Below, in pieces: positions 617-47,600 of a stretch of 64,000 nucleotides of DNA. Under the pieces are notes generated by a model. It worked only from the letters and a program-made list of their open reading frames with translations, ran no database searches and was not told the origin of the DNA. Position 1 is the first letter of the stretch. Every line of letters starts with the position of its first letter. The stretch is taken from positions 744,001 to 808,000 of the forward strand of contig JBLDXI010000034.1 in assembly GCA_047495785.1 (NCBI GenBank). Direction: 5' to 3'. This stretch comes from Lepidodermella squamata. Taxonomy: Eukaryota > Animalia > Gastrotricha. Position numbers and translations under genes: made by a program.

Positions 617-1995
617 TTTTCACCGGAAAAATCTACAAAAAAATCAACAATAGGAATTAAATGCTCTATGAAAAAATAAGAATGCGAAATGCTCGTCGTA
701 AATAACAATCCGTGAATGTTGGCCAACCATACGTAGAAGTTTGGAGACCTCTATCATCGCTATGTTGGTTCATATTTGAGCATTTTGTGAAAACCCACCA
801 AGAATTTATAAGGTAATCAAGGTAAAATTAAATTTTAACATTGGATGAGAAATATATATAATAAAATTAGCAAAAAATAATAATAAAAAAAAAATAATAT
901 TAAAATTGAAATTTTTTTAATGAAAATGGGAAAATTAAGGGTTCCTCAAGGGTGCATACAATATGCTCTTGCTATCACGTGACAGAGATCAGCCATGATA
1001 TAATTTTAATTTCAGGAGATATGAATTGCTGAGGTACAAATTCAAAGAATTTCCGTTGCTAGAAACCAACATAGCATGCTTGAAGCGCTCATTCATAGAA
1101 AGAATACTCGAATTTGGCAATTATTCGGAAGTTAAATTCGGGGTAAATTTAAATAATCACGGAAAATCCCGAAATCCTCAATTGAAGGCTGAATTTCATC
1201 AGGCAACTTGAGAGATTGTTAAGAGTGCAAGTTTCATCTTCAGAAGTGTAAAAATCTTATCATCTCTGCCAGAAAGCGATATGGGGAATAAGCGCACGAA
1301 AAAACTGAAGAAGAAAACGTGACGTTATAGGCTGAACGGCAAAAAGCTCGTAACGTAGTGCCGCTGGCGTGTTGCCTCTCTTGAGTTTTTAAGTCAGTAC
1401 GCAACAGGCTTTGGCGGCGCCACGGCTACACACCTGGCAAGAACGTGTGAGAACAACTGTGTAAATAATCACGAGCAGATGATGATGACAATATAATGAC
1501 AAAAAAACACATTTCTTGTTCGCGCGCGCGTATTTTTTGCATAATATATTCAGACGAAAATTGTGTGCGTTTCGCTTTTTTCCTGGCAAATAAATGCGGC
1601 AAATGTAAAAATGTCATCTTCCGCGCATCAATGACATAATATTAGGTCAAGAATTAATGTCACACATTTTAAGCATGAATAATTGATTAAATAAATATCG
1701 AATTTCGTCATGATTGAAAACGGAAAACACAAAAAAACGGGACTGAAATTTAGATGTTCATTTTGTTCCACTTCAATTGTTACCTCGCTGAGTGCATCAT
1801 CACTTCCATTGTTCTCCGAGAGAGCCATTAAATAGTGTAGCTTGCAAGCTGTTCGCAAAGCCATTACGCTAATAATGAGATGATAACACAGTTAAAGAGT
1901 AAAGACCATCCGCAAAAATTATTAGCGTCACGCGTAAGTCTACTGATGAAGCGGATAGAAAAGTAATGGCCATTTTAGGTTATTAGCAAACAAAA

Positions 1996-4442
1996 ATGAC
2001 GTCTTGCTACATCACGCAGGCCATTTTTATCGCTATCCTTGTTCTAACGCAAACACTCACCTGTTCGAATCAAAGCACGGCGAAATCGGCCAAGGTTCTT
2101 GCTGAGAACGATTACGAAGAAGATTTCTACCATGACTACGCCGTTGAACAGGAAAAATCTAACCGAGACCGGTTCAGATTTTTGAAGGATAAACACAATT
2201 TTCTCATCGAGCATGGCCTGGAGAGCGGGAATTTCTGTAAACTTCGTTACGGACCGGACGAATTGTCAGCGTTTCTGAATTTCCTGTTGAAACAAGGCGG
2301 AGTGTTACGGGAACAATGCGAGGCGTTTCGAGACGAAAATGGGCCGCCAACCAGCATAAATTCAACAATTGTCTATCTGCTATGCGACTTTGTGCACAAC
2401 AGCATGGAACTTCGATCGATTTTGAGTGAGAACGAGTATTACCCAGATTTTTGTAACTCACTCGAATGTAACTACGAGGCTGAGATCAATTGGCTTGGCA
2501 TCGCTCAAAACCTGTCAAAAACTTGCCCGTTCTGGTCGGATAAATCTGTGGATGATTATTGTTTCGCTCTTCAAATCGATAGAGCCGCTAGTCTTTATCC
2601 TAGCCATTTCCCAGCGATTTCTCAGGGATTCAACCACCTTATTTCCTTCATTTGCGGGGCGGTTTCTGTCGCTGGCCCAGACGATTGCTTCTCTATTGGA
2701 GGATGCATTTATCAAGCGATTCAAGGTGCTGATGTTGAGAAGATTCGTGACAATGGTTGTGCAAAGTGTCGAGGGAAACCCACTGGACTTGTACCGAAAA
2801 CTTGGCAGCCTTCTCTCAAGCCTTGGTCGGACCATACTCCGAACAGAGAAATCCGGGGAAAATCGAGGTTAGAGTTCTTTTTCTTCTCACACCGCAAAAC
2901 GTTGGCCGCCTTTAATGAATATTTTTGAATTTTTTGTCCAATTAAAAATTGATAGTTACTATAATCTCAAATTATTAAAGTCAATTAATTTTTCTAGTGT
3001 TTTGTAGTTTAGAAAAAATATTATAAAATTCAACAAAGGTTCAAAACATTTAGAAGGAAATTCTTCTAGTGAATTCTCCAATACTAATTTTCCTTTTAGC
3101 TTTCATAAACACTGAATTATTCAATTTTCTTTCCCCTACCTTTAGATCAAATTTGGGAATCATCCTTTTTGATGCCGCTCCCTTGGACAGTAGCTGTCTA
3201 TGCAAAGAAAGCACAACCAAGGCCACGGAATCTCAATGCTACTGCTGCCCGGCCGACTACAACGGCCAGGGCATGGATATCGAGCAAAAGGGCTGCTGGC
3301 TGAAACAAGTCCTAACCGACCGAAAACCAATGCGAAAATGTTCTCATGAATGTCCAGCCTTATGCGACCGAAAATCCGTCAAACCCCTGCCGTGCTACAG
3401 CAGATGGTCCCGTAACAATCGAACAGCTGTTATCAAGAAACGACAACGATTGGTCTCTACACCGAAATCCACGACGCCTACAACCCCGAAAACAACCCCT
3501 GGGCTCGATGATAGGAGCTGTCTAGCGAAATGTAGCCCGATAGCCACCAATGTAACTGAGTGCTCATGTTGCGACAATCGTATGGATAACTGTCAAACTC
3601 TACTGAGCTTCACAGGTGATACGGGGCTAAATTTCTGCATGAGTTATTGCTTCAAATACTGTGAAGCTAAGGAATTATGCTCATCCAGCGATTTAGTCAC
3701 CTCAGCTACAACACCTGTACCGAATGAGGAGGAAAACTGTCTGGGGATCTGCGCTGATCAAACTGCGAATAACAGTACATTGTGCTACTGCTGCATCGGA
3801 AATTCTTTAACCTGCCAATATGCGTTGAAATTCAACGGAAAATCGGAATGTTCGAACCAGTGCGGTGATTTATGCCGATCTCAAAAGTTCTGCGTCTCTG
3901 AACCTGAACCAACTACAACCTCTTCGACAACAACCTCTCCAGCTAGAACTTCAACTACAACTACCCCGTATTCTCCCCGCTATACTTCATGTCAATGTCT
4001 TGCTGTTGGCGATGAAAAGAAGAGTAATTGCTTCTGCTGCGACGAGGACTGCATGTATACTGGGACCTATTTCGCAAATGTAACGAGTTGCGCCCAATTT
4101 TGCCCGGCAAACTGTAATTTAGCTGAAACTTGCTCAACACATCACCGAACTAGTCCTTCATTTAAACTTCAAGACCAGGAGGTCCAAACATCCATTTTCG
4201 AGGGTCAAAGTTGTCTATGCTACAGCTCAAATTCTACCTCAACAAGTTGCCACTGCTGTACGAAAGACTTTGGCGATCCGCAATCGCAGTTTGAAGTCGC
4301 TAATTTGTGTCAGGTGTCTGTTAACGTTACAGGCCCGTATTCGCGGGCTCAATGTCAGTCGTCATGCCCCGCACAGTGCAACATACCTTCACACATAGAT
4401 TTTTGCTTCACGCATCCGTCTAAGCCTTTGTTAATAGGCTAG
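1996..4442 (+). CDS. Secreted cysteine-rich protein A (~722 aa; exons 1996-2867, 3146-4442)
   Basis: Hydrophobic signal peptide. A phase-2 GT-AG intron (2868-3145) joins two ORFs in frame. N-terminal Cys-rich domain, then five CxC...CxCC modules separated by Thr/Pro linkers. AATAAA at ~4471. Confidence 0.8.
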
Positions 4443-4530
4443 TATTTGTATTGTACATGTGAGCTTTATGAATAAAAAATACGTTGTTTACTCACACTTG
4501 AAAAATAATGAAAAATCTACCTTAATAAAA

Positions 4531-6132
4531 ATGATAATTTTCGCGATTTTATTAAATTTTTTACAATTTTCTCACATTTATGCCTGTTTCTCGCCGTCGA
4601 AGAAAGGACCGGTTAAGGTGAAGAAAATCAACCCCGATGCTGCTGGGACTCAAATCTGTTCTCTCAGCTACAACTCAGCTCAATTTACGAAATTCACGGC
4701 TTTTTTACTCGAACAAAGCTCTGGAATCGGCCAGAGTTGTAGGAGACAGGATTTCTATCAGCAAAGCCCTGATGAATCGATTTCGCAGACATTCTGCAAC
4801 GCCTCGAACCATGCTTTAGCGATACGGTCCAGTTATAACGAAGCGAGATTCTATCCGGATAGATGCAGCAAACGGCAATGCTTGGAACGATTGGACCGAA
4901 ATCTTGAGGCTTTATCCCGAGTCTTAGCTCAGTCATGCCCGGTTTGGACAAGTGCTTCATTGAATAAGTACTGCCTATCAGTAGAAACGGACGATTTCGA
5001 GAGGTCGGAGGCTTTCTCTAAAGGGTTCCACCTTTTGATCTCATGGCTATGTTCAGCCCGGCCTGAAATTGGTGAACGGATTAACTGCAACCAAGTCCAG
5101 CCTTGCATTTTACAAGGTCTTACCGCCTCAAAAGTCGAGGAGATTCAGAATCATGGCTGTAAACGCTGCTTATTGGACGAGGAAAACACTGAGCAGGACG
5201 AAGACGAGGAGGAGGAAAAATCGAAAGATGTTATGGACGATCGAATAGAAGACGAAAATTCTTGTCTTTGCCAGGAGAGAACGAACGATGATACGGCTGT
5301 CACGTGTTACTGCTGTCCATTATCATTTTCCGGCAAATTCACTGGCAGAATTAGGGATACGGGGTGTCTACAAAAGGCCAGCTATGTCGGGAGTCTTTCG
5401 ATGAAAAATTGCTCCATGGACTGCCCGAGTCGGTGTAGTCCTTATACTGTATACCCTATGGATTGCTATGGTAGACTCCTTAGTCGGGCTGAGCGTCCCC
5501 TTCCTGTCCCAACTCTCAACGTTACCAGCGGCCGAAATGCAAGTAACGTGACCCTGGCACCTCCAACCACAAGAGCTCCGACTACAGCAGTTACCACAAC
5601 TGCAATTACTCGTAAAGGAGGGTGCTCTTGCAACTACATCAACGATACTGCGACTAGATGTTCGTGCTGTAAGGACAATATCTGTAATATGGTCCTACAA
5701 ACTAGATCCTACGAGGTTTGCGGTGATATTTGCTACAACGCTTGTTATGCTGCCGAAAGGTGCACCAGTACCAGGGTAAATTCGATGATAGTCACACCTA
5801 GCGGAACTTCTACTACGACTGTTCCGACTTCAACGCGAAGGTGGAGAACGACCCGTGCTACGAAAACAACAACCATGGATTTAGGTAGGAATTAATTCTG
5901 TAATTTAAGGCTGAATTTTCATTTCAAATTTTTCCAGTAATCGATTACTATGAGGACAACGAGTTTTACAACACGAAGAATTTCACCACGCCTTGAATCT
6001 ACACTTACTGGTAATTAGATTTCAGCTCGGTTCTCGAAATCTATTTGTTTTATTAATTTTCCAGCTCCGGAAAGAGTCAATCTCTGCAAATTGGTTGTCT
6101 GTTACATTGAGGCTACCATTGAAACTGAATAA
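4531..6132 (+). CDS. Secreted cysteine-rich protein B, tandem paralog of A (exons 4531-5884, 5938-6010, 6065-6132)
   Basis: Signal peptide MIIFAILLNFLQFSHIYA. Shares motifs with A (YPDxC, CPxW, SxGFxxLISxxC, CIxQ, VExIxxxGC, SCLC...CYCCP) and has Thr-rich linkers. The last two exons are inferred from splice sites only. Confidence 0.75.
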
Positions 6133-6308
6133 AAATCCTAGATTATAGCTTTGATAGCGGTTTCAGAAGGTTTCGAAAGCTAGTGCGCCCCGTAATGCAT
6201 CCCACGCTAATGAAAAATTATTTACTGGTTGGAGCCTTTTAGGATGAAAATCTCCTTCTGCTTAGTACGTACGTCAATCATTGCAAGCACTTGTTTTTTC
6301 TATACGAA

Positions 6309-8920
6309 ATGAAGTTTTTAATTCTGGCTATCGTAATTTTCCAAGCTTCTGCTGCTAGGGACATCTTCAAGAAGCCGTACACTCTGAAAATTCCTGCAAC
6401 CCTGCCACTAACTGGTCCGTTACCACTAGCTAAAATGTGCACTGAATCCATCGAAATGATGCTGCGCCGTATCAACGCCCAAACTGAAATATTGCCAGAT
6501 TACAATGTCGTAGTCGACATTATCGACGACCAATGTCAGGGAAGTACTGCTCTGAACAAATTTCTTCCGTTCTTTCAGAGTGAGAGTCGGAAATCCGATT
6601 TATTAGATCCTGAGTCTTCAATCATTGGAACGAAAATCATTCCCGAGGACATTCAGTTTGCTAGGAAAAGTTCCATGAATGCTGTTATAGCTCCGCTTAT
6701 CGTTGGTGGAATGTGCTCGGCGGTTTGTAGGGTCGTTGCTCGATGTGTTCAACATTTCAACATTATTAACGTAAGCTCGCCCATTAATTTATAATTTTGT
6801 GGATAATTTTCAAAAACCTTTCCAATCTTATGCTCTGATTCATTCTTTTTTAAATATTTTTTTCAATTTTCAGTTTTCCGCAGGATGCAACGATATAAGC
6901 TTCATGAATCGGAAAACGTACCCGAATTTCTATCGAGTGATAACGAACCTTCAGCTGGTGCAAACCACTGTGCCTCTAATCAAGCTAATGGGCTGGAATA
7001 GAGTCGCAATCATTTCCGACACTAACCCACAGCTTTTCAAGGTTAATTGCTCTCACTAATGTCTGTTTTTTTCAATGTATCGTGCGTCATTCAAGGTTGC
7101 TAATGATATTTTGATCCTGCTACAAAGCGAAAATATCACCGTAACAGCTGTCGAGTTCTTTACGGAAGATCCAACTGAAGTTGTTAGTAGGATCAAGTCA
7201 ACGGGAACAAGAGTTATTTTCGCAAATTGCTACCTAGACACATGCCCAGCCCTAGCTTGCCAGGTATATCATTTCAGACCTGTATTTTCTATTAAATTTA
7301 GAAATATTCTCAGGCGTACCTTCAAGGCTTGTATGGACCCCGAATAATTTGGATGTTCCCTGCTTTAAATTTTGTGACAAGCAAGCGACTTCCTAACGAG
7401 TGTACCCCGTCGATGATGCAAGAGGTCGATAAAGGAGCGCTGTTCTTTCAGCAGATACCACTGCATTACAGAACAAAGCCAATCGAAACAGGGCTGACTG
7501 GCCAACAGTTGGACGACTTTCTAAATGCTACAGTTCCAGGGATTTGGAACGATTCTCTTGTGGACTCGCGCAAAATGTGCATTGATAACGTTTTGCCAGC
7601 GATCTACGTTCTGGATTCAGTAGAAAAGCGGCTGCAATCGCGTAAAGAAATTTGAAGTATTTTACCGAAAATTTCATTATTTCAAATTAAGGTGGCTCTA
7701 ATTTACACGAGTACGTCTCAGATCGGACGAAGAGTCGTGAAATGGAGGAAATCATTCGAGATTCCATGACATCGATCGACATACGCATTTTCTCGGGTCG
7801 AATTCGCTACGAACCTGGCCAGCACGAGATTGAACTTCCAGCCGGTTACTGGCAGTCCCAGGAGAACGGATTACGACGCCTAGTTTACTTGGATAAAGGA
7901 GTCGAGCGGGAGAATGACTCGAGTCGCTACGAATTCCGTACAGCAATGCGATGGCTTACTCTTGATGGGAAACCCCCAAAAAGCGAGCCTACTTTGAGCC
8001 TAATCAAAAGGATGGTCCCTGAATGGCTAAAAGCGATAGGATTACTCATATCAGTCCTTATAATCCTTATTTGCCTCTCGCTAGCTGGAATTCAGTACTA
8101 CCTCAGGGAGCAATACCAATTGTTCGCAGCGTATCCTGAAACGACTTTCTTCGGATTAACAGGATTCATATTTCTTCACTTGAACATTCTGATTTTTTCC
8201 GAGAAGAATTTGATGTGCCAAATTTGTCCTGTAGTCACTACTCTCGGTCTTTCCCTGTTGAGTGGATCTTTCATCATCAAACTAACCCGAACAAGGTTGG
8301 TCGTGTGTTACGCCTACAAAATCGATAATGGCGGGAAGAATTCGAAACAAGACGTCAAAATTGTCGTAGAAGAAGAGGCTCTGTTAAAATATATGAAAAA
8401 GCGACGCGAAAATTTGTTCTCTATGACTGTATGGCTGTGCTGTAATATGTCTGTCATCTTACTTTGGTATGTTGTTGGAAATCCACCTTCGATTCGTAAA
8501 TCCTACTTCGAGACTTATGACGATTTTCGTGATGAGACTCGCCAAGAATTGTCTGAAAAATGCTATATAGGTGATAACATTTTCTCTGAAATCTTCGCCT
8601 CTGTTATCGTAGGTCTTCAAGGTCTAAGCTTAATCACCGCTTTTGTACTAGCCGTCCTAAAACGGCGATATGTCTACTCTGAAATCCGATACTCTGTTCG
8701 CAGTGTTTACATCCTCCTACCAGCTGTTTTGTCCTGCGTTTTCTTCATAAGCATTGAACAGCGAATTGATGTTGTTTTTCATTTCTTAACCTTCATGATT
8801 GATTTCACGACCGTTGCGATATTGCTTACACTTTTCAAGAAAAAGCGTAAAATCTACGCTCGCAATTTACGGCAAAAAACAACGTACACGTTGAGTAGCC
8901 AAATTTCATCGCAGAATTAG
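6309..8920 (+). CDS. Class C GPCR, GABA-B-like (VFT + 7TM), copy G1; exons 6309-6770, 6874-7041, 7096-7263, 7314-7641, 7692-8920
   Basis: Signal peptide. VFT motifs INAQTEILPDY, DDQC, CSAVC, YPNFYR, GWNRVAII, GLYGPRIIW. Seven hydrophobic segments and no nine-Cys domain. All four introns restore the frame. Confidence 0.88.
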
Positions 8921-9026
8921 GCCACTCCCCATATCTTATCTCTGTTATTTATTGTCAAAAGATATGCCAAGAGTTCAGTAAAAAAAAAACCAACCGTGAA
9001 CTCCACGCCCGTCATATACAAAAAAT

Positions 9027-10250
9027 ATGAAGCTGATAATTTTTCTCCAATTCTTAGCTCTTGGCCATGCGATTGATTCGTATAATATCGATCCTAACGA
9101 AGTGACTGTATCTGGCCTATCATCAGGCGGATATTTCGCTGTCCAGCTTCATGTTGGATTCTCCGGAATTTTCAAGGGCGCTGGGGTTGTAGCAGGGGGT
9201 CCTTACTACTGCGCCCAGGGCAATATGCTGACTGCAACTTCAGCATGCATGAAAAGCCCGGGCTCGATAAACGTGAACAACCTCGTCTCTACAACTAAAC
9301 AATGGGACAAAAGCGGCTACATCGACCCAGTGTCAAATTTAGCCGGATCCCCAGTCTACCTGATATCCGGGACTAAAGATACAGTTGTAGTTCAGGGTGT
9401 TATGGATAAATTGAACGATTATTACAAGCAATTCTCGGCTGATGTTACTTACAATAAGGACATAGCTGTAGGGCATGCTTTTGTGACGGAAAATTACGGA
9501 GGATCTTGCGGATCGAACCAGTCGCCATACATCAACAAATGCGGCTACGACGGAGCTGGCGCGATCTTGAACAAGCTCCACGGCCCTTTGAAGGCTAAAT
9601 CTTCGTCGCTGAGAGGCAAATTCATCGAATTCGACCAATCAAAATTCTTCGCGTCTAGTAAATCGTTTGGCCTCGCGAAAACTGGTTGGCTCTACGTCCC
9701 AGTGTCTTGCTCGAATGGGCAACTGTGTAAACTGCATTTTGTCCTGCATGGCTGTGTTCAAAATTACGGTACTGTCAACGATAAAGTTGTGAAGAACACC
9801 GGTTACAATGAATGGGCTGATTCGAATGATATAATTGTTGTCTATCCTCAAATTGCAACTACTGGAGCCACAAACAACTGCTGGGACTGGTGGGGAGACC
9901 AGAAGGACGCGAGTAATTACGCGAAGAAGACCGGGAATCAAATGTCGATTTTCAAACGAATGTTGGACGCTTTCCTGGCTGGGAAGACTTCTGAGCCAAC
10001 TAATGGTGGGTCGACCCAAAGTCCGGATGAGAAGACTACGCCGAAGAAAACTACGTCGGGTGAAGGACCATTCGGAGCCTGTTACAAGTCGAATAATTAC
10101 GACCATGTTAAGGATGGCAGGGCGTATCAGAAATCCGGAATGACCTACGCAAAAGGCTCGGATCAAAGTATGGGTCTTTGGAACATTTTTGTCTATACCA
10201 AACTTCGGCTGATGTCTACTGATTATTACATCGTTGACTCTACTTGCTGA
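9027..10250 (+). CDS. phaZ: Extracellular short-chain-length PHA/PHB depolymerase with C-terminal substrate-binding domain; intronless
   Basis: Signal peptide; lipase box VTVSGLSSGG; AGGPYYCA; putative catalytic Asp in GTKDTVV and His in GHAF; LHGC and CWDWWG motifs; Thr/Ser linker; SBD motif NYDHVKDGRAY...YAKGSDQSMGLWN...C. AATAAA at ~10307. Confidence 0.9.
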   Translation: MKLIIFLQFLALGHAIDSYNIDPNEVTVSGLSSGGYFAVQLHVGFSGIFKGAGVVAGGPYYCAQGNMLTATSACMKSPGSINVNNLVSTTKQWDKSGYIDPVSNLAGSPVYLISGTKDTVVVQGVMDKLNDYYKQFSADVTYNKDIAVGHAFVTENYGGSCGSNQSPYINKCGYDGAGAILNKLHGPLKAKSSSLRGKFIEFDQSKFFASSKSFGLAKTGWLYVPVSCSNGQLCKLHFVLHGCVQNYGTVNDKVVKNTGYNEWADSNDIIVVYPQIATTGATNNCWDWWGDQKDASNYAKKTGNQMSIFKRMLDAFLAGKTSEPTNGGSTQSPDEKTTPKKTTSGEGPFGACYKSNNYDHVKDGRAYQKSGMTYAKGSDQSMGLWNIFVYTKLRLMSTDYYIVDSTC

Positions 10251-10369
10251 GGAAAACACTCGACGCTTGTATCCATTTTTGGCTTGCTTTGCTACGTGAT
10301 ATGCCTAATAAAGCCCATATCACATGTTTTTTTTAGAGAAATCTACGGCAAGGTCTGCGTGAAGGAGAC

Positions 10370-10851
10370 CAGTGACTTTGATTTGATTTGATTTGATTTA
10401 TTCAGTAAATCACAGGTCTCTGTAAATCAATCATTTCAAATCAAATCCCCAAAACTCGATAGTAAATCAATCAAATCAAATCATCAAGCCCGTTTAAATC
10501 AAATCAAATCAAATCTTTCGCATAGGGAAACATGAGTATCATGGTAAAGTTCCGGGGGTTCTTTCAAATTTCAAACTTGATTTTGGTTGAATGAGTATGA
10601 AAGGGGATGAATAGCTCTGGGCTTTAGAAAACAGCTGTTTTCAAGGCAAATGTAAGTTCTCATGTTTAGTAACAGGGGGAGATCCGAGAGTTCTTATTTT
10701 TATAAATCAGCAGTAAATCAAGTGGGCTAAATTTAAATTAAATCAAATCATCCTGAAATTTTCTAAATCAAATCATCAATAAATCAAATCATCAAAAAAT
10801 GGCCTAAATCAAATCAAATCACAATCAAATCAAATCAAATCAAAGTCTCTG
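10370..10851. mobile_element. Non-autonomous TIR element (MITE) rich in AAATC pentamers
   Basis: Left end CAGTGACTTTGATTTGATTTGATTTGAT is the near-perfect reverse complement of right end ATCAAATCAAATCAAATCAAAGTCTCTG. A second copy lies at 18283-19723. No TSD detected. Confidence 0.75.
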
Positions 10852-12119
10852 CTTTTTGGTCTTGTGGTGGATATAAATTGGAAGTTGATATGCCTCATTT
10901 TCGCATTAACAACGCCACAGTTCATGCCATCAGCAGTGCCTATTTACAAGGAGCACAGTCCCTGACAAGCGCACGGTCAGGGTCCGGGTCCGGGTCCGGC
11001 CCCGGGGTGGTTGGTAATTGAATGAAAATAATAATCGCTAATTTGCGTTATCAAAAAATGATAGAGGTATAATAATAATGAACAAAGTTTTTTTTTAATT
11101 ATTTTCTGCCGGATCGTAGCCTTCTATTTTTTAATTACAGAAATAAAATTTGCCAAATAGTATGTCTGTCGAGGCTTCTGGATCGTATCCGGACCGTTAC
11201 GCACGGTCAGGAATTTATTGAGTTGAAACTAAAAATATCTCACACGCGCCCGAACTATTTTTAGCTCCAAGCTTGGGTTGAACTCAGCTAAAAATAAAAG
11301 AGTGTAACTCGGACAGACCAAGAAGTTTTAATAGTTTTAAAAATATGAATATTCATGAGGTGCTAATTAATATTCCGAAGCCCTCAAAGTTGATAATTAA
11401 GTCAGAAAAATTATGGAAAAATTATTTTTGAATAGTTATAAACTTACTCTAATTGCTAAAATTTGTCTGCAATATTTGGCACTTGACTAAGAATGTCCTA
11501 GTTTCATGACATTTCATGAATATATTCATATTATTGAAACTATCCCCCTTTCCCTGGAGCCATTTTTGGAGATCGTGAATAGGGCGTCATTTTGGTCCGT
11601 TTTGCTGGGGATAAACTGCCTCATTTCGCACGTGCGAAAAATTTCAACTAGCATCGCCTCAATTCCACCGTGCGGATCTTTTGATTGTCACTGTATACTT
11701 GCTGAACTACACCAACCATCTTATCAAATAAAAAGCGAATATATTCCAAATGGTTCATACCCAATTTGGAATTTAATTCAGATACCAAATTGAAAAATTA
11801 ATCTTTTTTGTCTCAGATTTGGAATGTCTCAGATTGACCAACCGAGTTGAGCTCATTCTGCCGTTCACTTCGCACCGCTATCACGGTCGGCCGCGAGGTG
11901 GACTTCATGGCCACAGTTGATCTTGCCTTGAAAACAGCTGCAATAATCGGCAACAGACCAGTGTTGATTGCCTTATCGCCAGACCAAATTTTCGTCGCCG
12001 TGATAGCCATCGAAAATGTGAATGATATCTTTGTTGTCGGGAATTAGGCGACGCGTCGAAGCTCTAATAGCTAACTGCCTGGCCAAAGGAGCGCCTCGTC
12101 TTTTCAAAATCCCAAAACT

Positions 12120-26158: not shown

Positions 26159-29100
26159 GGATTTATGTCCGATTCCCCGAAATAACTTCCCCGAAAACTT
26201 GTTGCCCGAAAAGTGCATCGCCGAAATAATTTCCCCGAAATAACTTCCCCGAAACGATTAGTCGTTGTAGTAGCGACGAGAAAGACGCTTGTTAGGCTCA
26301 AGGAATTTCCCCGAAAACACACACATGCATAAACTGCAAGAAGATGAATAAACAAATATTATTATCTAAAATTAATGCACAGCTATATAGGCGGTTTCCC
26401 CGAAAACACGCGGATGCACACAACCACTTCCGCATGAGCTGTTGGCATAAACACAGAGAATCGACGTGAATTGACATAAAAAGACGCCCGTCCGAAGGAG
26501 GTTAATCCTCTTAGGTCTTAGGCTGGACGCACTGATTAAAACCGGAAAGAACACGGGTGCTATATGAAACATGTATTATCACAGCTGCATAGAAAACGCG
26601 CGTAAATCAACATCAATGTATTGGAGTGCAATTTAAGCATTAGACCAGCATTTGCTTTAATAAACTCTGGATCTTTCAAACTGTAATCAGTAAAAGATGC
26701 TGACGGCTATAAGATTTCTCCCATTGCAGTCACTTAATATTTATATTTTTTTATTTATTCCAATGTAAGCTTGGTCCATGATCTGGCTGAACTTCATTTG
26801 CTGCTGATTTCAATTAAATTTCAAATTTCAAATTCATTAAATATTGCGGAATTAAGATGTTAATGTTTGAATTAGATTTTGACCAGCTACAATAAAAGTC
26901 GCTTCTGTTATGTCTAAAACAACAAGATCGAAGAGAGTGTCACCCCTGATCAGCCTAACTATGATTAAAAAGGGGCGCGGAAGACCGAGGAAGACTCAGC
27001 CTCAGCCTCAGCCGAATCCTGTCACGCCTCACTTACCTGGTAATTTAAAAATTCTCGAACTCCTGAAATGCATTCATGAATTTGTTTGTGAAAGCGCCAT
27101 CTCAAACCTCAACTCAGGTAAAGCCGCTGAAGGCTAAGAAGCGTGTTGCTCCGGTGACTGTTGACAGCCTGGTCTCTCTGATTTCGCCCATCGCAGTAGA
27201 TACTCGACTCGACTCGCCAGACGTCTTGGACTCGCCCCCATCTCTCGAACCGCAATCGCCTCCTCGGTCGCCGTTGGCTGTCGAAAACAGCACGCCGTCA
27301 GGCTCTCCGGATTCACCCCCGCCGGAAAGACCGCCGCTGGGAGCCCCGGAAGCCGATTATCTCCGCTACGTCGAGGCATTCGAAGAACACCACCGGCGCA
27401 AAGCGAACAAATTTCGTGATCGAAACGCTATTCAGCCTTTCGAGAAAAAAGCGATGCGCAGGTACAAAGCTGATCTCTCCGCAAATTCAGCTCAACGCGG
27501 CTGTACTTTTGAAGACGTTAGTCAACTTTCGATTCAAGCCGAGTCAGAAGCTGTTTTGCGGTACCGAAATGCACATGGTGGCTGTGTTGTCGTGTACAAG
27601 GGTCGTATTTACCTGGAAGATCGTCACGTGATCCGCGGCAAAGAATACATTTATTACCGATGTGCTAATCATCGTGAATGCAAATGTGCCGCCAAGCTAC
27701 AACCGCAAGACGTTCCAGCGATGCCGTCGAATTACGAAGGCGGCGTGTGCAAATGGGATAATCGGCCGATGAAGGTCTATGGGCCTGTTGTCGAGGGTCA
27801 TGAAGGCGATGATAGCGATGAGCGATTTCACGCGGCGGCTTGCATTTCGAATCACGAGCAAATCGAGGCTGACTTGGCGGAAGAAGAAGTCCTGCGTAGA
27901 GTCAGGGAAATGCCTGATAAGGCACCAAATCAACTCTATATTGAAGTTCGCAACGGTCTCTCGAGGGAGGTGCTGAAGCTATTCCGTCCATTCGAGTCGA
28001 TGAAAAACCGGTTTTACTGCGCGAAGAAGGAGGAATATCCGCCCAACCCCGACGATCTAGATCATCTGCTGGAAATAGTGAAGTCTGCCGTGCAAAATGA
28101 CCCTGATGCGATGGAAGCCAACAACTTGGATAGATTTTTGTACGACCACAAAGGGCGAAAATTCTTAAGAAAATTTTATCATGACGAATCTGGCAAGGCT
28201 TACATGATTTTTGCAACCGATGATGGACTGAAGAGAATGGCTCGAACGGCTCGGTGGTTCTTCGACGGCACTTTCAAAATGGCTGCGAAGCACTTCATGC
28301 AAATGTTCACAATCCACACGATTGAACATGGCGTTTCGGTACCGGCGGCCTACGTGCTGATGACGAATAAAGATTCTAAGTTATACGAGTCTATGTTCGA
28401 AACGTTTTTTTCGATGATTGAAAAGCTTGGCGAGCCCCTTGCCCTAGAAGAGGTGACATGTGACTACGAGTCGGGTCTCTTACCGGTTCTGCGAGAATTG
28501 CGAGGAAAAAACGGCCAGCGACTCCGCATCATCGGCTGCCATTTCCATTTCAGGTAAATTCTTAAAATTAATTTCTAAAAATTTTGAACTTCAAAAATTT
28601 AGCTCAATTTAAATTTTAAATTTTTATCTAAATTTTTGAATTTTAAATTTTTTGTTGAAATTTCTAAATTTTATTTTAATAATTTTAATTTTCAAATTTT
28701 AGTCTTGAAAATTTTGAAATTTTGAATTTTAAATTTTTCATAATTGAATTTTTTTCAATTTATCTTTTTCTTTAAAGCCAAGCCATAATTCGAAAACTGG
28801 GTGATTTGGGCCTCCTTAAATATTATCGAAAGCCGAGTCGGGTGGCAACTAACGTGACGCGTAGTTACGTCCGCCGCTTTCTAGCTCTAGCCTTTCTACC
28901 CGTTGAAGATGTGCCGAGCGCCATTCATTATCTCATCGAAAAAGCTCCCGCAATTCAAGCTATGAAGCAATTCTGCACGTATTTCAATTCAACGTGGGGC
29001 GAGAAAGGGCTCTTTCCTCCATGTGAGTGGAACGTTCACGACGAAGAAATACGAACAAACAATGTCGTGGAAGGTCAGCACTATTATTTCTCGTTTTTCG

Positions 29101-29653: not shown

Positions 29654-32056
29654 TCAATAATCGAAGCGATATCCTACCCGACTACAACATTGTCATAGAC
29701 TTGGTCGATGATCAATGCCGAGCTCCTCCTGCTGTGGAACGCCTGATTCCTTTCTTCGCTAGTGGCAGTCGAATGTTCAATGAAACGGGACAGATCGGGC
29801 ATTATACGTTGCCGAATGAGGCTGAGTTCTTGAAATATTCCGCGAAAACAATATATGTGCCACCGCTCTTAATTGGTCCAATGTGCTCGAGTGCTTGCCG
29901 TGTCGTTTCAAGATACTCTCAACTATTCGACCTAATCAACGTTCGTTTTCGTCTTTAACATATATGGGTATCGTATCCTTTCCAAATCTTCCAAATTCCA
30001 AAGTATTAATAAACTTTTTTATTTAACAAATTTAACAACAATTTATATCAATTTTTTTAATTTTCCAGTTTTCCGTTGGATGTAACGAAGCAGGTCTTTC
30101 TGATCGAAAGTTGTACCCCAATTTGTACCGCGTGATGTCAAACAGTCAAATTATAACAACCCTGATGCCGTTTTTGCAAATCATGAAGTGGCGGAAAATT
30201 GCCCTAGTTTCGGACACGTCACCTTCGAACTTCCAAACGACAAACGACATGCTTGAAATATTTCCCACTGGGAATATAACCATTCTGGCTAGCGAGTTTT
30301 TCATCGATGATCCAACAGAAGCTGTTCGAAGAATTAAGGAAAGTGGGGCTAGAATTATCGTCGCTAACTGCTACTTTGATATATGCCCAAGCCTTGCATG
30401 CCAGGTAATTATGTGATGATAGCAAAATTGATCACTAACACCTTGCTTTTCAGGCCTTTCTACAGGGTCTTTCTACAGGTTTCCTAGAGCCACCGATATC
30501 GTGAATGTCCCAGTATTTCCGGATGGCTGTGACGCCAAAAGTCTTCGAATAATTGATTCTGGCTCAATGTACTTCCGCCAAGTTCCAAATGATTATAAAT
30601 CAGGGCTGACGGCCCTTGGAATCACAGGGCAACAACTGGACGATTTTTTTACACAGCATTCCCCCGAAACATGGCGCAACCCTCGGGTGGACTCGAGATA
30701 CATGTGCCTGGACAATGTTATACCACCAGTATTTGCTCTGGATGCAGCCGAGAAGAAACTGAACCAGAGAAACTCATCACTACGCTATTACATCGAAAAT
30801 GGCTCGATTTCCTCGGAACTGAGCGATATAGTTCGAGATCACGTGAAACATTTGGATATTCGAATCTTCTCTGGTAGGATTCGGTATGTGAACAATGACC
30901 AAGAAACCCTTGTGCCCACTGGTTACGAGCAGTCTCAAGGTGACGGAACTAAAAGTTTAGTTTTTGTCGATAATGGGGTCGATGCGGTTGATCATTCGAA
31001 ACGATTCGAGCTCAAAGGAACCTTTATTTGGAAAACGCCTAATTCCAAACCTCCAAAGGATGAAGTTTCGATCGTAATAGCTTCGAAATTGCTAGTCGAC
31101 TGGGCAAGTGCATTGATAATGTTTTTGGCAGCTTTTTGAGCGTCAAATTATTCATTCTTCTAATTTTACTCGGAATACTGACGAAGAACTCGAAAGTTTG
31201 CAAGATTGAAATCCGCGGGAGTATTTCGATTGCCTCTGGGCTGATTTTCCAACAAGTTGCTATCTTACTCCATCCTCGTGGAACAACTGATTCGGATGGC
31301 ATGGTTTACTTTTGTCAAATCGCTCCTGTTCTGTTGGCAATCGCCTATACTCTAATTTCCAGCGGATTGTACCTAAGACTTCGGTTGAAACGAGGCCCAA
31401 TGCGTCAAAGGCGTAGTGCATGGAAAGCTAACAGGATCGATGTATTTCGATTGTCTTCGTTTAACATTTCGAGGCCTTCATCTCAGACCGTCCAATTATC
31501 ACGCCCACGCGCAGCAAAGAGTTCGTATTACTCGATCGCGGGTTTTGTCCTTACTAATTTCCTACTTCTCGTCGCTTGGTACGTGTTTGGAGGTGTTCCA
31601 AGCGTTCGAGACATCACCACGTCGCGGATTGATCTTCGAAACGACGTACTATTTATAGAAGTTTCAAAGTTCTGCTCGTCTCAAGGCTCAGAAAATGTTC
31701 TATATGTCTTCGCCGGAGGTTTACTAGCGACTCATGGTCTAGCGTTGATCCTGCTGTTCATCCTAGCTTTGATCAAGAGCCGAAATAAGGACCAAGAGCA
31801 TCGCTGTATTATCATATGTTGCTACGTCATTTTGCCTGCTACGCTAGCTCAGGTTCTAGCTGTGCTGATTTTTGTGGCACCCGAAGCGAAGTTCTACTTC
31901 CTAAGTTCTGCTACCATATTGACAAGTGCTGCAATTGTTTCGATGCTGTTTGCCGATAAACGGAAGCTGATCTTGCAGGAAATCAGTAACATTTGTCGGG
32001 CTTGTTTTCCCGGTACCAAAATCCCAGAAGAACCGAAACAGCGAGGTTCGGATTAA
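29654..32056 (+). pseudogene. GABA-B-like class C GPCR pseudogene (G2), 5'-truncated
   Basis: Starts mid-exon (NNRSDILPDY) directly after the MULE TIR. YGPNIVWV is replaced by a CTTTCTACAGG duplication near 30455-30480. Frameshift in TM1 near 31135. Confidence 0.85.
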
Positions 32057-34045: not shown

Positions 34046-36522
34046 ATGTCGTTGAATATAGCTGCACTTATATTAGCGTTCATGCTGAGATGTTCAAATG
34101 GCGTTACTTTGACCAAGCCTTACACGCTACGAATCCCCGTCACCCTGCCTATCGGAGGGCCCATTGCACCACTCGGTAGAATGTGCACCGAGTCAATTGA
34201 GCTGTTCCTTCGAACTATCAATAATCGAACCGATATTCTACCCGACTACAACATCGTCGTAGACTTGGTCGACGATCAATGCAGTGCAACTCCTGCCGTA
34301 GACCGCCTGATTCCTTTCTTTATTGGTGGAAGTCGAATCTTCGATGAAACGAAGCGTATCGGGCATTTTACGCTGCCGAGTGGTGCTGAGTTTTTGAAGA
34401 ATTCGGCTAGAAAGAGCTATGTCCCACCTCTTTTGATCGGCTCGCAGTGTACGGCTGTCTGCCGCGTTGTTTCGAGACAAACTCAGCTTTTCGACATCAT
34501 TAACGTTAGTCCCAAATATAAACGAATTTTGATCAAAATCTTCATTTGATTATTTGAAATTTCAGTTTTCCGCAGGGTGTAATGATGCAAGTTTTTCTGA
34601 TCGAAAGCTGTTCCCAAATTTGTACCGCGTGTTGTCCAACAGCCAAAAATTAACCACCATGATGCCGTTTCTACAAATCATGAATTGGCGGAAAATTGCC
34701 CTAGTTTCGGACACTTCGCCGTCACACTTCCAGACGTCGAAAGATATGATTGAAATATTTCCCACTGGAAATTTGACCATTGTTGTTAGCGAGTTTTTCA
34801 TCGATGATCCAACGGAGGCTGTTCGAAGAATCAAAGAAAGTAGGGCTAGGATAATTTTTGCTAACTGCATTTTTGACATATGCCCAAGTCTTGCGTGCCA
34901 GGTATTTTTATGCCTGCTATCAAAAACATGAAACCGCTCTTTATTTTCAGGCATATCTTCAGGGCCTTTACGGTCCAAACATCGTTTGGGTATTTCCAGG
35001 GGCTACTGATTTCGTAAATATCCCAACATTTCCAAAAGGCTGCGACGCCAAAAGTCTTCAAATCATCGATACAGGCTCGATGTACTTTCGCCAGCTTGCG
35101 AATGATTACAAATCTGCCACGACAGCTCTTGGAATCACCGGGCAACAACTCGACGATTTTTTCACGCAAAATGTACCGGAAACATGGCGAAGCCCGCTAG
35201 TTAACTCGAGATTCAGGTGTTTGGACAACGTTCTACCTTCAGCTTTTATCCTGGATGCCGCAGAGAAGCAACTGAACCAGAGGAATTCATCCTTACGTCA
35301 TTACATCGAAAATGGCTTGATGTATCCGGAACTGAGCAAAATAGTTCGAGAACAGGTTGAAAATATGGATATTCGGATCTTTTCTGGTAGGATTCGGTAC
35401 GAAAAGAATGAGCAACAAACCTTGGTGCCAACAGGGTATGAGCAGTCTCAAGAAAACGGAACTAGACGAATGGTCTTCGTCGATAATGGGGTCGAAGCTG
35501 TAGATCAGTCTAGAAGATTCGAGGTGAAAGGTACCTTCTTCTGGAAAACTCTCAACGCCAAACAGCCAAAAGATGAAATCATAGTCAAAAAAACTTCGAA
35601 ATTACTGGTCAGCTGGGCAAGTATTTGTATCATGGTTCTGGCAGTTCTTACGATAGTCATTGCGCTCATTTTATTATCCTGCCTCGGCACATTCTTGAGA
35701 GATTCAAGGTTCAACAAGGCTGAAATTCGAGGAAGCATTTCCATAGTCACCGGGCTGGTTTTCCTGCAAATTTCTATCCTGTTACATCCCTATCAAACAA
35801 CTGATTCGAGTGGTATGGTTTACTTCTGTACTGTCGCCCCAGTCTTCACATCGATCGCTTATTCACTCATTTCCAGCGGATTGTTCCTGAGACTCGAGTT
35901 GGACATGAATTCACATGAATTTCGCTCGAGTCGCAATGCTTCGAGACCAAGCCGCTTCAATCTATCTCAAAAGACGAGTTTGAAGATTTCGACATCTTCC
36001 AACAAGATCGCTAGTCCTCCCCGGCAGCAAGTGGCCAAGAGCTCATATTACTTCATCGCTGCATTTGCTATTTCTAATTTGCTGCTCCTCGTCGCTTGGT
36101 ACGTGTTTGGAGGGGTCCCAAGCGTTCGAGACATAATCACGTCTCGTATCGATCTTTACAACGACGTGGTCTTTGTAGAAATGTCAAAATACTGCGCATC
36201 TTACGGTTCACAAATTGAGGTTTATGTATTCGCCGGGGGTTTACTGGCGATTCATGGTATTGCGTTAATCTCGCTTTGCGTGTTAGCGATGATCAGAAGT
36301 CAGAAAAGTGACGAAGAGCTTCGCCGTAGTGTGAAATGCTGCTTTGTAATTATGCCGGCTACGTTAGCCCAGGTTCTAGCTGTACTGATATTTGTGGAGC
36401 CCGAAGCAAAGTTTTACTTCTTAAGTTCTGCTACCATATTGACAAGCGCTGCGGTGATTCTGATACTTTTCACCGGTAAAAGGAAGATAATTATGCAGGC
36501 ATTCAAAAGTATGGGCCGGTGA
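34046..36522 (+). CDS. GABA-B-like class C GPCR G3; exons 34046-34504, 34566-34901, 34951-36522
   Basis: Signal peptide, VFT and 7TM; two GT-AG introns restore the frame; paralogous to G1. Confidence 0.88.
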
Positions 36523-44689: not shown

Positions 44690-47600
44690 AACTTACATCA
44701 AGTTAAAATCAAAAATCAATAATAATAGAACAAAGGACAAGATAAAGGGTTGAGCAGAGGGTGAACAGGCGCTTGTCAGAGGCAGTGCGCAGACGACGAT
44801 ATTGAGGAGGCAAATTTGAGAATTTATCCCAGGCCGGGATATTCATCTGACTAATTAAGAAAGACGACGCACAGAGAGGCTTGACAGCCACAGAGAGGTA
44901 GAAGACGGCGACAAGTTGAGAGCAGCAGCGTGAAACAGACAGGAGAGGACTGACGGAAGGCAGAAAGCATAACAGACACAGAGGACAAGAATCATGCACA
45001 GCTTGGGAGCAAGCTGCGAAGCTGCGTCTTGGCGGCGGAGGGGAACGCAACAGCCCCGAAAGTCTCAATTGAGCGGACGAGAGAAAGAGAAAGCGCGGCG
45101 CCATCGCAGGGACAGGCCCGGACGATGCAAGGCCGTGTGAAACCAGGACAAATTACGCCCGCACCGTCGGATGACGTGCTGTATGTAGCATGAGACGTAG
45201 CTAGGACGCCGCAGCTGGGTTGTTTACGAGAAAAAAGTGTTGTCAGAGATAATTAGGGTCAAAGGTCACTTTTTGAAAATAATGAGATGAATCACCTCAT
45301 TAAATTTTCGCGCTCTTTTCATCCTGATTTTATGTTGTCCAAAAAAGGTTAAAAGTTCCCTTCATTCAGGCGCAATCAATCGTCATGAATTGACATTCAT
45401 AGCAACACAATCAAAAAGTGAAATCAACTTCAGTTTCGAGCCATTAATTTTCAAAATCGATTAAAAATGGACGAAACTAAAATCAAAGGATGTAAGGAAG
45501 ATGCTTGGTTTCCAAATTTACTATAGGGAATCATTGAAAAAATTGCCTAAACATTACAAATTGTTTATCTTAAGTAGTTCGAGCTTATACGGAGAATGCT
45601 TATTGTAAATTTAGGCTAAAAAAATGAGAAAAACCGAGAATTGAAAAATCTGACGAAATGAGATCCAGCAAATATCTCAATTTGGCATTCCAGTTTGAAC
45701 CGCCAGTAATTTATTAGGCCGAAAATGGGTAAATCAAGTTTCCGGTGAAGGTCCTATAGCCGAAAGCGTTGAAAATTTTGACTGAAAAACATTTCCTGCT
45801 GGATTGTTTAAGAGTTTTTCGTTGACGTTGTTTATCTGACGTCATTACGCAACAGCTGCAGCATAATCGCGACGTGGAAAAGAAAAACAACTCAATGGAA
45901 TAATTCATGCAGCTTGTTTGAGTTGCTTTTTGTCTCAAGAAAGTAGTTTGCTAAGCTCTACATCTCATAGTTTAAGTTCTCTCGATCTGTGAGTTCCGAC
46001 TTGGAGCCTGATTCTAGCTTTGTAACCATCGACGCCTACGATTTTTAAAACCTTTCGAAATTTCAAATTAATATTTTTTAAATTTCAGGGATTAATAAAA
46101 TAATATTTTTATTAAACCCTGAAAATTTAATTTTTACAAAAGGGAAATTATTCAGAATATTCAAGCATGCATAACGCCAACACGTCAGTTTGTATGGCGG
46201 GATTCAAGCTTCGGCGTCCTAGCTACGTCTCATGGTATGTAGGGCTTCCAAGTGAGCTTTTCATCGAAGATGAGCCCGAGTATGCGCAACGCTGTCACTT
46301 GTGGAACGGCGGCGCCGCGTAGTTCGACTTGAAGGACTGGGGGCGGGCGAGAGAAAGCGATGGCTTCGCTTTTAGAAGCATTAAATTGCTGGCGCCTAAG
46401 GCAAGCACAGGCGGCAATTCGATCGACCTCGGTCTGGGTGAGCGTCTGAGCTTCGAAAAAGGTAGCGCCCGTGCTGGCGAGGGTGAGGTCCTCGGCATAA
46501 GCGTCCAGGGAGGTCCCAGTCGCACTCGGGGAGCGGAGTAAGTCGCTGGTGTAGGTGATGTAGAGGAGCGGAGAGAGCAGGGACCCTTGCGGAACACCGC
46601 ACTGTAACGTGACCTGCCGGCTGATGAGGAAACCGGCCACACGAGCTTGGAGCTTCCGGTCGCGTAAGTAATCTGTGAGCCAACCGATGAGATTACGCGG
46701 CAGGGGCAGTTGACCAATCTTTGGACCAATGGACCAAGCCAGCGTTACAAACCGTACGCCGTACGCGGCCTTCACATTGAGACCAGCAACAATCATCTTC
46801 CGCTTGGGCCTAATGAACGAGGTGGCGACACGAATTGCAATTTCAGCCGCCGTGCGATGCTCACGAAAAGCATACTGATTGTCCGGTAGAAGATGTTGAG
46901 CTTCTAACAGCTGAGTCATCCAACGAGCAATAATCGCCTCGAGAATCTTGGCAGCCGACAGCAACAGCGACGACGGCGAAGGGGACGGGGACGCGGCGAC
47001 GACGCACGGCATCACACGGCTTGCCCGGCCAGGGCATGGCCATGGCAACTGCCTCCTTCGAATCTGGCAGGATGTATTGGCTGCCGAGGCAGATGATGTA
47101 GCGCAGACGAAGGTGAGTCTGTAGAGGCACACCACCCCACTTATAAAAGACGTTGCCGACACCGTCGAGCCCACGGGCCTTGAAAGGCTTCAGGTTATCA
47201 ATTGCTCGCGCTAGAATGCGCTGTCCGACACTGTGTTCCTGCGGACCAGGTAGGCGAATTATGGCATCAGGCTGGAGGCGGTGGACATAAGTTGTTCAAG
47301 CTCGAGCCAACGATTACGGACAAGAGAGTCGGTAGCTGGTTCACAGTAGGGGTACATCGGAGCCACAAAGTGAGTGAGCAACTCGTCGGCGAGAGCGGTC
47401 GAGAGGTGGAGAATGGAGCCGTCGGGGAGGGTCATCGGACCGGTCGCGCTTTCGCAGACGCACCCAGGCTTCACGTTAGCGCAGCTGTTCAGAGAGGGCC
47501 TCAACTTGCCGCATCGCCTGCTTACGCTCGGAAACCACGGTAACGCCCTCCCTAACTAGAAAGGCGGCACCCCAAAGGAACCGTTAGAAAGTTGTAGATC

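Follow-up and report, generated by a model that had tools for sequence, protein, structure and literature searches.

A predicted three-domain poly(3-hydroxybutyrate) depolymerase of probable bacterial origin in the genome of the gastrotrich Lepidodermella squamata

Results

An intronless depolymerase gene behind a spliced receptor gene

The 64,000-nucleotide stretch of Lepidodermella squamata (Gastrotricha) DNA analyzed here, referred to as the window (assembly GCA_047495785.1, contig JBLDXI010000034.1, positions 744,001 to 808,000), carries an intact open reading frame (ORF) of 407 codons on the plus strand at window positions 9027..10250. The encoded protein resembles bacterial extracellular depolymerases of poly(3-hydroxybutyrate) (PHB), and we refer to it as the depolymerase. 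Its reading frame is uninterrupted. The first in-frame ATG serves as its start; an A occupies position -3, and an in-frame stop codon precedes the ATG by approximately 10 codons. A spacer of 106 nt separates this ATG from the TAG (8918-8920) of the preceding gene, which encodes a receptor. Sequence contigs from three sequencing runs were compared with the locus, namely a DNA run from 2024 (X1) and two runs from 2015 (X2) and 2014 (X3) that both behave as RNA. In run X2, a 50-nt GT..AG intron of the receptor gene (7261-7310) is skipped, and position 7260 is joined directly to 7311. Both the intronless ORF and the intron-containing receptor gene 106 nt before it were thus found as described in the original prediction, which had been made from the sequence of the window. 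A protein search and a search with the family hidden Markov model (HMM) located a single copy in the 121.2-Mb assembly of 151 contigs (C34:753027-754247), approximately 753 kb from the start of a contig that measures 808 kb or more.

Domain structure and catalytic residues

According to the DED (PHA Depolymerase Engineering Database), extracellular depolymerases of short-chain-length (scl) polyhydroxyalkanoates (PHA), designated dPHAscl, consist of a signal peptide, a catalytic domain, a linker, and a substrate-binding domain (SBD); catalytic domains of type 2 have their oxyanion hole after the catalytic triad in the sequence (PMC2666664). All sequence features that the DED asks for were recognized in the gastrotrich protein by HMM search, alignment, structure prediction, or, for the signal peptide, inspection (Table 1), which agrees with the Comamonas-type PhaZ layout assigned originally. 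The N-terminus, composed of Met-Lys, ten hydrophobic residues, and Gly-His-Ala, looks by inspection like the short signal peptide that had been proposed. The alignment with the mature chain of the Penicillium funiculosum PHB depolymerase (structure 2D80) starts at residue 15, the N-termini of homologs are variable and hydrophobic in this position, and the predicted local distance difference test (pLDDT) score is low for residues 1-14.

The catalytic domain matched the NCBIfam model of type 2 scl-PHA depolymerases, NF050059, with 372.6 bits (cutoff 280), residues 18-314 corresponding to positions 3-303 of the 305-position model. A six-frame search of the genome with the same model gave 373.5 bits, and 2D80 matched with an E value of 2e-53. 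The lipase box, G30-L31-S32-S33-G34, has the hydrophobic residue, a Leu, at position x1 that is expected of dPHAscl. In an alignment of 150 bacterial and animal sequences, G30, S32, G34, D118, H150, and G242-C243 are invariant, and so are the cysteines C62, C74, C161, C228, and C234, all of which the depolymerase has. Its oxyanion motif, H241-G242-C243, lies C-terminal to the triad (after H150), that is, in the type 2 order. The position of Cys243 matches the oxyanion cysteine conserved between the enzymes of Olavius algarvensis and P. funiculosum (Zeidler et al., 2026; PMC13642032).

Residues 321-346 of the linker are predicted to be disordered (pLDDT <50); in bacterial relatives, this place is taken by an FN3 domain or by poly-Pro. 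The SBD comprises 58 amino acids bounded by Cys352 and Cys407 and is modeled as a compact, beta-rich module with pLDDT values of 85-97. It is 67% identical to that of P0001, a metagenomic protein described below, and 52-57% identical (E of about 1e-21 to 1e-23) to Burkholderiales-type SBDs, including that of the Acidovorax protein P0104. The SBD is located at the C-terminus in 151 of 154 proteins carrying it.

AlphaFold2, run with a 150-row alignment, yielded a model with a mean pLDDT of 89.9 and with most residues of the catalytic domain (20-320) above 90; it replaced an earlier prediction from a 9-row alignment (mean pLDDT 52.8), which was set aside. The top Foldseek matches were 2D81 and 2D80, with an E value of 1e-33 and a template modeling (TM) score of 0.88 (normalized to the target). 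Judged by its sequence and its model, the protein is a predicted complete extracellular scl-PHA (PHB) depolymerase with a type 2 catalytic domain and an SBD.

Transcription, integration, and composition

A contig of run X3 is colinear with the genome from position 8941, 21 nt past the stop codon of the receptor gene, into the depolymerase ORF. At the other end of the gene, an X3 contig terminates at 10324, 12 nt past the AATAAA, and continues with 21 A residues. The AATAAA noted originally after the stop codon is accompanied by a polyadenylated, RNA-like transcript, part of the evidence for expression that had been called for. Contigs of run X2 reach across the 3' end of the receptor gene to beyond 8951. 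Independent data thus tile the spacer between receptor and depolymerase. The junction is also crossed by an X1 contig of 11,529 nt, which spans 7000-10369 with 0 differences and continues for more than 8 kb further upstream; X1 probably represents the data from which the assembly was made. Contigs from X2 and X3 are concentrated on the depolymerase gene and their depth is far above that of the neighboring receptor gene, contig depth being a poor measure of expression.

The G+C content at third codon positions (GC3) of the depolymerase gene is 0.51, compared with 0.39-0.50 in neighboring genes. Its relative synonymous codon usage correlates with that of host genes with a coefficient of 0.51, inside the range observed for host genes among themselves. 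Such host-like GC3 and codon usage are incompatible with a recent contaminant from Burkholderiales. We conclude that the depolymerase gene is a host-integrated, transcribed, and polyadenylated gene of host-like composition and not a contaminant. Horizontal transfer is not mentioned in the paper describing the genome (PMC11660948).

A candidate splice acceptor (ttcag, last base at 8978) lies in the 5' untranslated region (UTR), as does a run of ten A residues (A10). This acceptor provides the AG nearest to the depolymerase ATG, 48 nt upstream of it, and the X3 contig runs straight through. Several other ATG-started ORFs of the window have an AG, often as TAG, 5-17 nt before the ATG. Neither AATAAA nor ATTAAA occurs in the spacer (8921-9026). 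Whether the depolymerase transcript is trans-spliced or co-transcribed with that of the receptor is a matter of two candidate possibilities.

A second expressed variant of the depolymerase was observed in X2 and X3 (window positions 9486-10287), which is 6-10% divergent over the contigs compared and absent from both the assembly and X1. Twenty-one coding differences are listed for it; 20 are synonymous, including a change of the stop codon from TGA to TAA, and the remaining one is Thr398Ala. That nearly all differences are synonymous indicates purifying selection on the depolymerase. An allele, a paralog that the assembly lacks, and a second lineage in the cultures are possible explanations of the variant.

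Relationship to bacterial and animal depolymerases

Type 2 PHA depolymerases (PHADs) have been reported from 66 animal species in nine phyla, among which Gastrotricha does not appear, and they cluster with protist enzymes; examples are those of O. algarvensis, Amphimedon, Lumbricus, and Folsomia (PMC13642032). These animal PHADs have approximately 330 amino acids, no separate SBD, and multi-exon genes (10 exons in O. algarvensis) (PMC13642032). We found no SBD in the named PHADs of Ciona, Glandiceps (a hemichordate), Owenia (an annelid), and Namystynia (a diplonemid); for these and for fungal 2D80, the initial statement that fungal and animal enzymes generally lack a separate SBD holds. In the gastrotrich genome, no copy of the animal-type PHAD family was detected.

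When the best 80 loci were taken from 185,579 bacterial and archaeal species genomes, all 80 belonged to Burkholderiales. The catalytic domain of the depolymerase shares 54.6% identity (52.8-56.5%) with Burkholderiales enzymes versus 42.3% (39.7-44.0%) with the animal clade, and the nearest bacterial protein is only about 56% identical. Two further characters agree with this pattern: the depolymerase has a shortened loop, A-T-N-x-C in front of WDWW, in common with Burkholderiales alone, and an NYAKK motif in common with Burkholderiales-proximal bacteria alone. Small indels of animal-like appearance were considered as well but rejected; they represent the general state, which also occurs in other bacterial clades, and the derived changes lie in the core Burkholderiales.

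One relative, P0001, is a metagenomic protein of 413 amino acids that is 61% identical to the depolymerase. The two proteins agree in their three-part layout and have private indels in common, and P0001 has a Ser/Thr linker; the contigs that encode it are AT-rich, contain introns, and resemble eukaryotic DNA. In maximum likelihood (ML) trees, the depolymerase and P0001 form a clade with 100/100 support. The core Burkholderiales enzymes are the sister group of this pair (78/85); the larger clade, to which an Oxalobacteraceae sequence also belongs, is supported with 91/89. The PHADs of Ciona, Glandiceps, Owenia, and Namystynia group together, and the depolymerase lies across the split from them. 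Support for this split between the animal and the bacterial side reached 97-98 in the approximate likelihood-ratio test (SH-aLRT) of quick trees and 96/84 in the careful tree. Among 1000 bootstrap trees, the sister group of the pair included Burkholderiales but not any animal rows in 974, and it included animal rows in 0. The grouping with vertically inherited animal homologs that would have spoken for descent was hence not seen, subject to the topology test discussed below.

Searches of 5.8 billion and 1.8 billion proteins gave no member of the pair's subclade beyond the depolymerase and P0001 among the matches listed, and when metagenomes were scanned with pair-specific patterns, no match came closer than 50% identity. 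In an exact-sequence lookup in a collection of 15 billion proteins, neither the depolymerase nor a host HSP70 was present. Named homologs of the HSP70, at 73-78%, came from molluscs, arthropods, tardigrades, and vertebrates alike and did not by themselves point to one phylum. The HSP70 closest to that of the gastrotrich, P0138 (83%), comes from the same ENA sample as the P0001 contig. This provides circumstantial evidence that, in the closest relative sampled, P0001 represents the ortholog and that the gene is older than the split of the two hosts. Beyond the depolymerase gene, no synteny was detected between the window and the P0001 contigs; the P0001 neighbors match the genome at only 35-37%. 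As a separate observation on the HSP70 family, the gastrotrich assembly (G000) carries at least four near-identical intronless genes of the inducible type (contigs C2, C12, and C15; loci L005-L008), which score about 870 bits each and have a GC3 of 0.72-0.74, far above the genes of the window.

Genomic neighborhood

The coordinates of the features are compiled in Table 1. The last large exon of the upstream neighbor gave no usable match against Pfam, and the same applies to the neighbor of P0001. It is, however, a paralog (E 2e-53) of a window ORF at 34858-36519, which 7tm_3 matches weakly, and further upstream, at 6291-6791, there is an ANF_receptor exon. On these grounds, the neighbor is assigned to the class-C-type receptors; its exons were searched one at a time, without joining them into a spliced model. 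In the wider window, we found further class-C-type receptors, Cys-loop channels, a MULE/FLYWCH transposase, and a reverse transcriptase. With host genes on both flanks, the depolymerase gene is embedded in ordinary animal DNA.

Table 1. Window positions of the depolymerase gene, its parts, and the preceding receptor exon
Feature	Position	Strand	Basis or remark
Upstream neighbor, last large exon and stop codon (392 codons)	7742..8920	+	Class-C-type seven-transmembrane (7TM) receptor; host context, outside the enzyme gene
Minimal 5' UTR of the depolymerase transcript	8941..9026	+	X3 contig 17 covers 8941-9617, colinear with the genome
Signal peptide, residues 1-15, predicted cleavage after Gly-His-Ala	9027..9071	+	Sequence inspection
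Type 2 extracellular scl-PHA depolymerase catalytic domain (predicted), residues 16-320	9072..9986	+	HMM, alignment, structure prediction
Codon of Ser32 (lipase box GLSSG)	9120-9122		
Codon of Asp118	9378-9380		
Codon of His150	9474-9476		
Codon of Cys243 (HGC)	9753-9755		
Ser/Thr/Pro/Lys/Gly-rich flexible linker, residues 321-349	9987..10073	+	Alignment, composition, pLDDT
C-terminal substrate-binding domain, residues 350-407	10074..10247	+	SBD homology, pLDDT
Stop codon TGA (TAA in the second expressed variant)	10248..10250	+	Sequence and run contigs
AATAAA poly(A) signal (10307-10312); poly(A) added after 10324	10307..10324	+	Sequence; end of X3 contig

The receptors at 7742-8920, 31136-32056, and 34858-36522 constitute a local family of very divergent class-C-like 7TM receptors, with the depolymerase gene inside the array; their mutual identity is 27-29% and they show weak 7tm_3 matches only. 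An ORF for a MULE transposase with a FLYWCH zinc finger was found at 27076-28557, and a reverse-transcriptase ORF at 46230-48229 on the minus strand, in a GC-rich island (up to 58.5% GC at 47-48 kb). The 3' flank of the depolymerase gene (10370-11500) is highly repetitive, with short repeats of the GATTT/AAATC type in both orientations and many alternative joints, and the depth of the DNA run jumps there from 44 to 1,200-6,700. This repeat may be a dispersed repeat or an element resembling miniature inverted-repeat transposable elements (MITE-like).

Discussion

Comparison with known depolymerases

Validated type 2 dPHAscl enzymes of Burkholderiales come from Comamonas sp., Delftia acidovorans, Acidovorax sp. 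TP4, Caldimonas manganoxidans, and Schlegelella sp. (PMC2666664). The gastrotrich protein shares with enzymes of this kind the domain order, the Leu at lipase-box position x1, the order of triad and HGC motif, and the conserved cysteines, in addition to the sequence identities given above for catalytic domain and SBD. It differs from them in that an animal genome encodes it, its mRNA signals are eukaryotic, and its codon usage is that of the host. Moreover, its linker is a 29-residue Ser/Thr/Pro/Lys stretch instead of an FN3 domain or poly-Pro stretch. Relative to Burkholderiales, the gastrotrich protein and P0001 have in common two additional residues after WWG and a 2-residue deletion near residue 137, and both keep a 3-residue segment that the core Burkholderiales have lost.

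With the animal PHADs, the depolymerase has the type 2 catalytic domain, the triad, and the oxyanion hole in common, at approximately 42% identity of the catalytic domain. Animal PHADs are mostly secreted and have been proposed to serve animals that eat PHA-rich microbes (PMC13642032); secretion is likewise predicted for the gastrotrich enzyme. In contrast to them, the gastrotrich gene is intronless, encodes 407 amino acids including a bacterial SBD, and falls on the bacterial side of the tree. Its origin is probably separate from that of the intron-rich, SBD-less animal PHAD family. In the course of the comparison, we came across P0002, a protein of 696 amino acids from a Logan assembly with two tandem animal-type PHAD catalytic domains and a Ser/Thr-rich linker between them. 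Both halves group with the Ciona PHAD, and such a double-headed architecture is not mentioned in the sections of Zeidler et al. that were consulted (PMC13642032).

Two PHADs of bdelloid rotifers group with fungi and bacteria, and Zeidler et al. left open whether this reflects recent horizontal transfer or contamination (PMC13642032). Like the gastrotrich enzyme, they are PHADs of micro-invertebrates outside the animal clade that have been read as possible horizontal transfers. Integration, polyadenylation, and amelioration, as found for the gastrotrich gene, set it apart from the rotifer cases as these are presented there. No rotifer-named protein was found among the best 120 matches to the depolymerase; the rotifer genes thus probably represent a different acquisition. 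The enzyme of P. funiculosum (2D80/2D81), the top structural match, has the same circularly permuted alpha/beta-hydrolase fold, and its triad aligns with that of the depolymerase. It is, however, a single domain of 318 residues without linker or SBD, and with 38% identity in the Foldseek structural alignment it is more distant than the Burkholderiales enzymes.

Origin and function of the gene

We consider it probable that the locus is a host-integrated gene for a secreted three-part PHB depolymerase, its activity being predicted, that an ancestor of the animal acquired from a Burkholderiales-like bacterium. Horizontal acquisition, as originally proposed, is well supported in silico, though not proven, by sequence identity, tree position, the shortened loop, the NYAKK motif, the SBD, the composition of the gene, the polyadenylation of its mRNA, and its linkage to host genes. 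The full amelioration of the gene points to an old event. In the proposed mechanism, the signal peptide would be removed and the enzyme secreted, most plausibly into the gut, a guess that derives from the bacterivory of the animal. The Cys-bounded C-terminal domain would then adsorb to PHB granules freed from lysed bacterial prey, and the disordered Ser/Thr-rich linker, possibly O-glycosylated, would let the catalytic domain range across the polymer surface. Ser32, His150, and Asp118, together with the Cys243 oxyanion hole, would cleave the ester bonds to give 3-hydroxybutyrate monomers and oligomers, and the animal may absorb and use the released 3-hydroxybutyrate units. We infer PHB hydrolysis by analogy with the characterized relatives.

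Several observations weigh against this interpretation. A tree in which the pair was forced into the 12-row animal clade was not rejected by the approximately unbiased (AU) test (delta lnL 21.3, p = 0.18), and the deep nodes and internal branches of the tree are short. For these two reasons, we regard a bacterial origin of the depolymerase as probable but short of certain. In a genome with long exons, the lack of introns carries little weight. The DNA used for the assembly came from one individual and had undergone multiple displacement amplification (MDA), a procedure that produces chimeras (PMC11660948). Because X1 probably comprises the source data of this assembly, its support for the junction is not independent. 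The label of X2 and X3 as RNA is a guess of the tool used, backed by splicing, the poly(A) tail, and gene-restricted coverage. Finally, a search of the genome with TIGR01963, the model of bacterial 3-hydroxybutyrate dehydrogenase, returned only generic matches to short-chain dehydrogenases/reductases (SDR) below the cutoff.

The topology test and the short branches leave room for vertical descent, in which the gene would be a divergent survivor of an ancient eukaryotic PHAD that still has its SBD, other animals having lost the SBD and gained introns; the likeness to Burkholderiales would then stem from slow evolution or from an old transfer in the reverse direction. The existence of a second eukaryote-hosted copy, P0001, fits this scenario too. 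Nevertheless, we judge it very unlikely. The identity to Burkholderiales exceeds that to the animal clade by 12 points, the loop deletion and NYAKK are derived states that Burkholderiales or Burkholderiales-proximal bacteria have too, and an SBD that is approximately 54% identical to Burkholderiales-type SBDs is missing from every named animal and protist PHAD. The bootstrap trees contain no animal sister group, and the matches listed in the two protein searches and the metagenome scan include just two eukaryotic carriers. These same two carriers bear on the route of transfer. The gene may have arrived through a protist, a fungus, or another micro-invertebrate, or the two carriers may have acquired it independently from related donors. 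Although forming a fully supported clade with private indels, they are only 61% identical and lie on contigs without synteny, and in both of them Ser/Thr-type linkers replace FN3 or poly-Pro. Such a relay nonetheless appears unlikely: the origin of the closest HSP70 from the P0001 sample agrees with simple descent in two related hosts that share an ancestor, the matches listed include no protist or fungal sequence of the subclade, and the fungal 2D80 is more distant and has no SBD.

A bacterial contaminant joined to host DNA by an MDA chimera or by misassembly, the artefact that a break in coverage at the junction would have pointed to, is close to refuted and hardly to be believed, even though 370 non-metazoan contigs had been removed from this single-individual MDA assembly (PMC11660948) and X1, the sole DNA run, was probably used for the assembly itself. 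In GC3 and codon usage, the gene resembles the host and differs strongly from Burkholderiales, a eukaryotic poly(A) signal and tail are present, and the nearest bacterial protein shows only roughly 56% identity. RNA-like contigs from 2014 and 2015 reach into the host spacer from 8941 with 0 differences, those of X2 covering the receptor 3' end, and the locus lies deep inside its contig with animal genes on both sides. It is also conceivable that the enzyme has changed its function and now acts mainly on other polyesters or lipids, or in adhesion or defense, rather than in PHB digestion. PHB activity is predicted from sequence, the linker has been replaced, and insertions private to the pair include the two residues after WWG near the active-site region. 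We hold such a change to be rather unlikely, since all family-invariant catalytic, oxyanion, and cysteine residues and the PHB-binding module are retained, the score is far above the cutoff of the equivalog model for type 2 scl-PHA depolymerases, and the more divergent SBD-less animal PHADs still degrade PHB (PMC13642032). An integrated depolymerase gene of bacterial origin, with PHB as the predicted substrate, is the reading we prefer.

Significance

Until 2026, degradation of storage PHA was known only from bacteria and fungi; Zeidler et al. then described an old animal PHAD family (PMC13642032). Because these animal PHADs and the possible rotifer transfers have been published, the novelty of the present gene is moderate and lower than initially assumed. 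New here, and well supported, is a probably horizontally acquired, SBD-bearing PHB depolymerase (by prediction) in a new phylum, with an origin probably independent of the animal PHAD family. The locus offers an integrated, expressed, and ameliorated case of an animal with the full bacterial version of the enzyme, including the SBD. As a predicted three-domain PHB depolymerase adapted to a eukaryote, it is a candidate for expression in eukaryotic hosts and for studies of bioplastic degradation.

The occurrence in Gastrotricha, in a genome in which no ancestral animal PHAD was detected, suggests repeated selection for access to bacterial PHB in bacterivorous meiofauna. In one possible scenario, the ancestral PHAD was lost in gastrotrichs or had been absent from the start, and PHA digestion returned with the capture of a whole bacterial enzyme, its polymer-binding module included, before at least two lineages split; we see the chances for and against this scenario evenly balanced. 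If it is true, animals would have evolved the digestion of bacterial storage polyester on at least two occasions, through descent in one case and through gene capture in the other, and the SBD-bearing animal enzyme may be more effective on crystalline PHB than its SBD-less animal counterparts.

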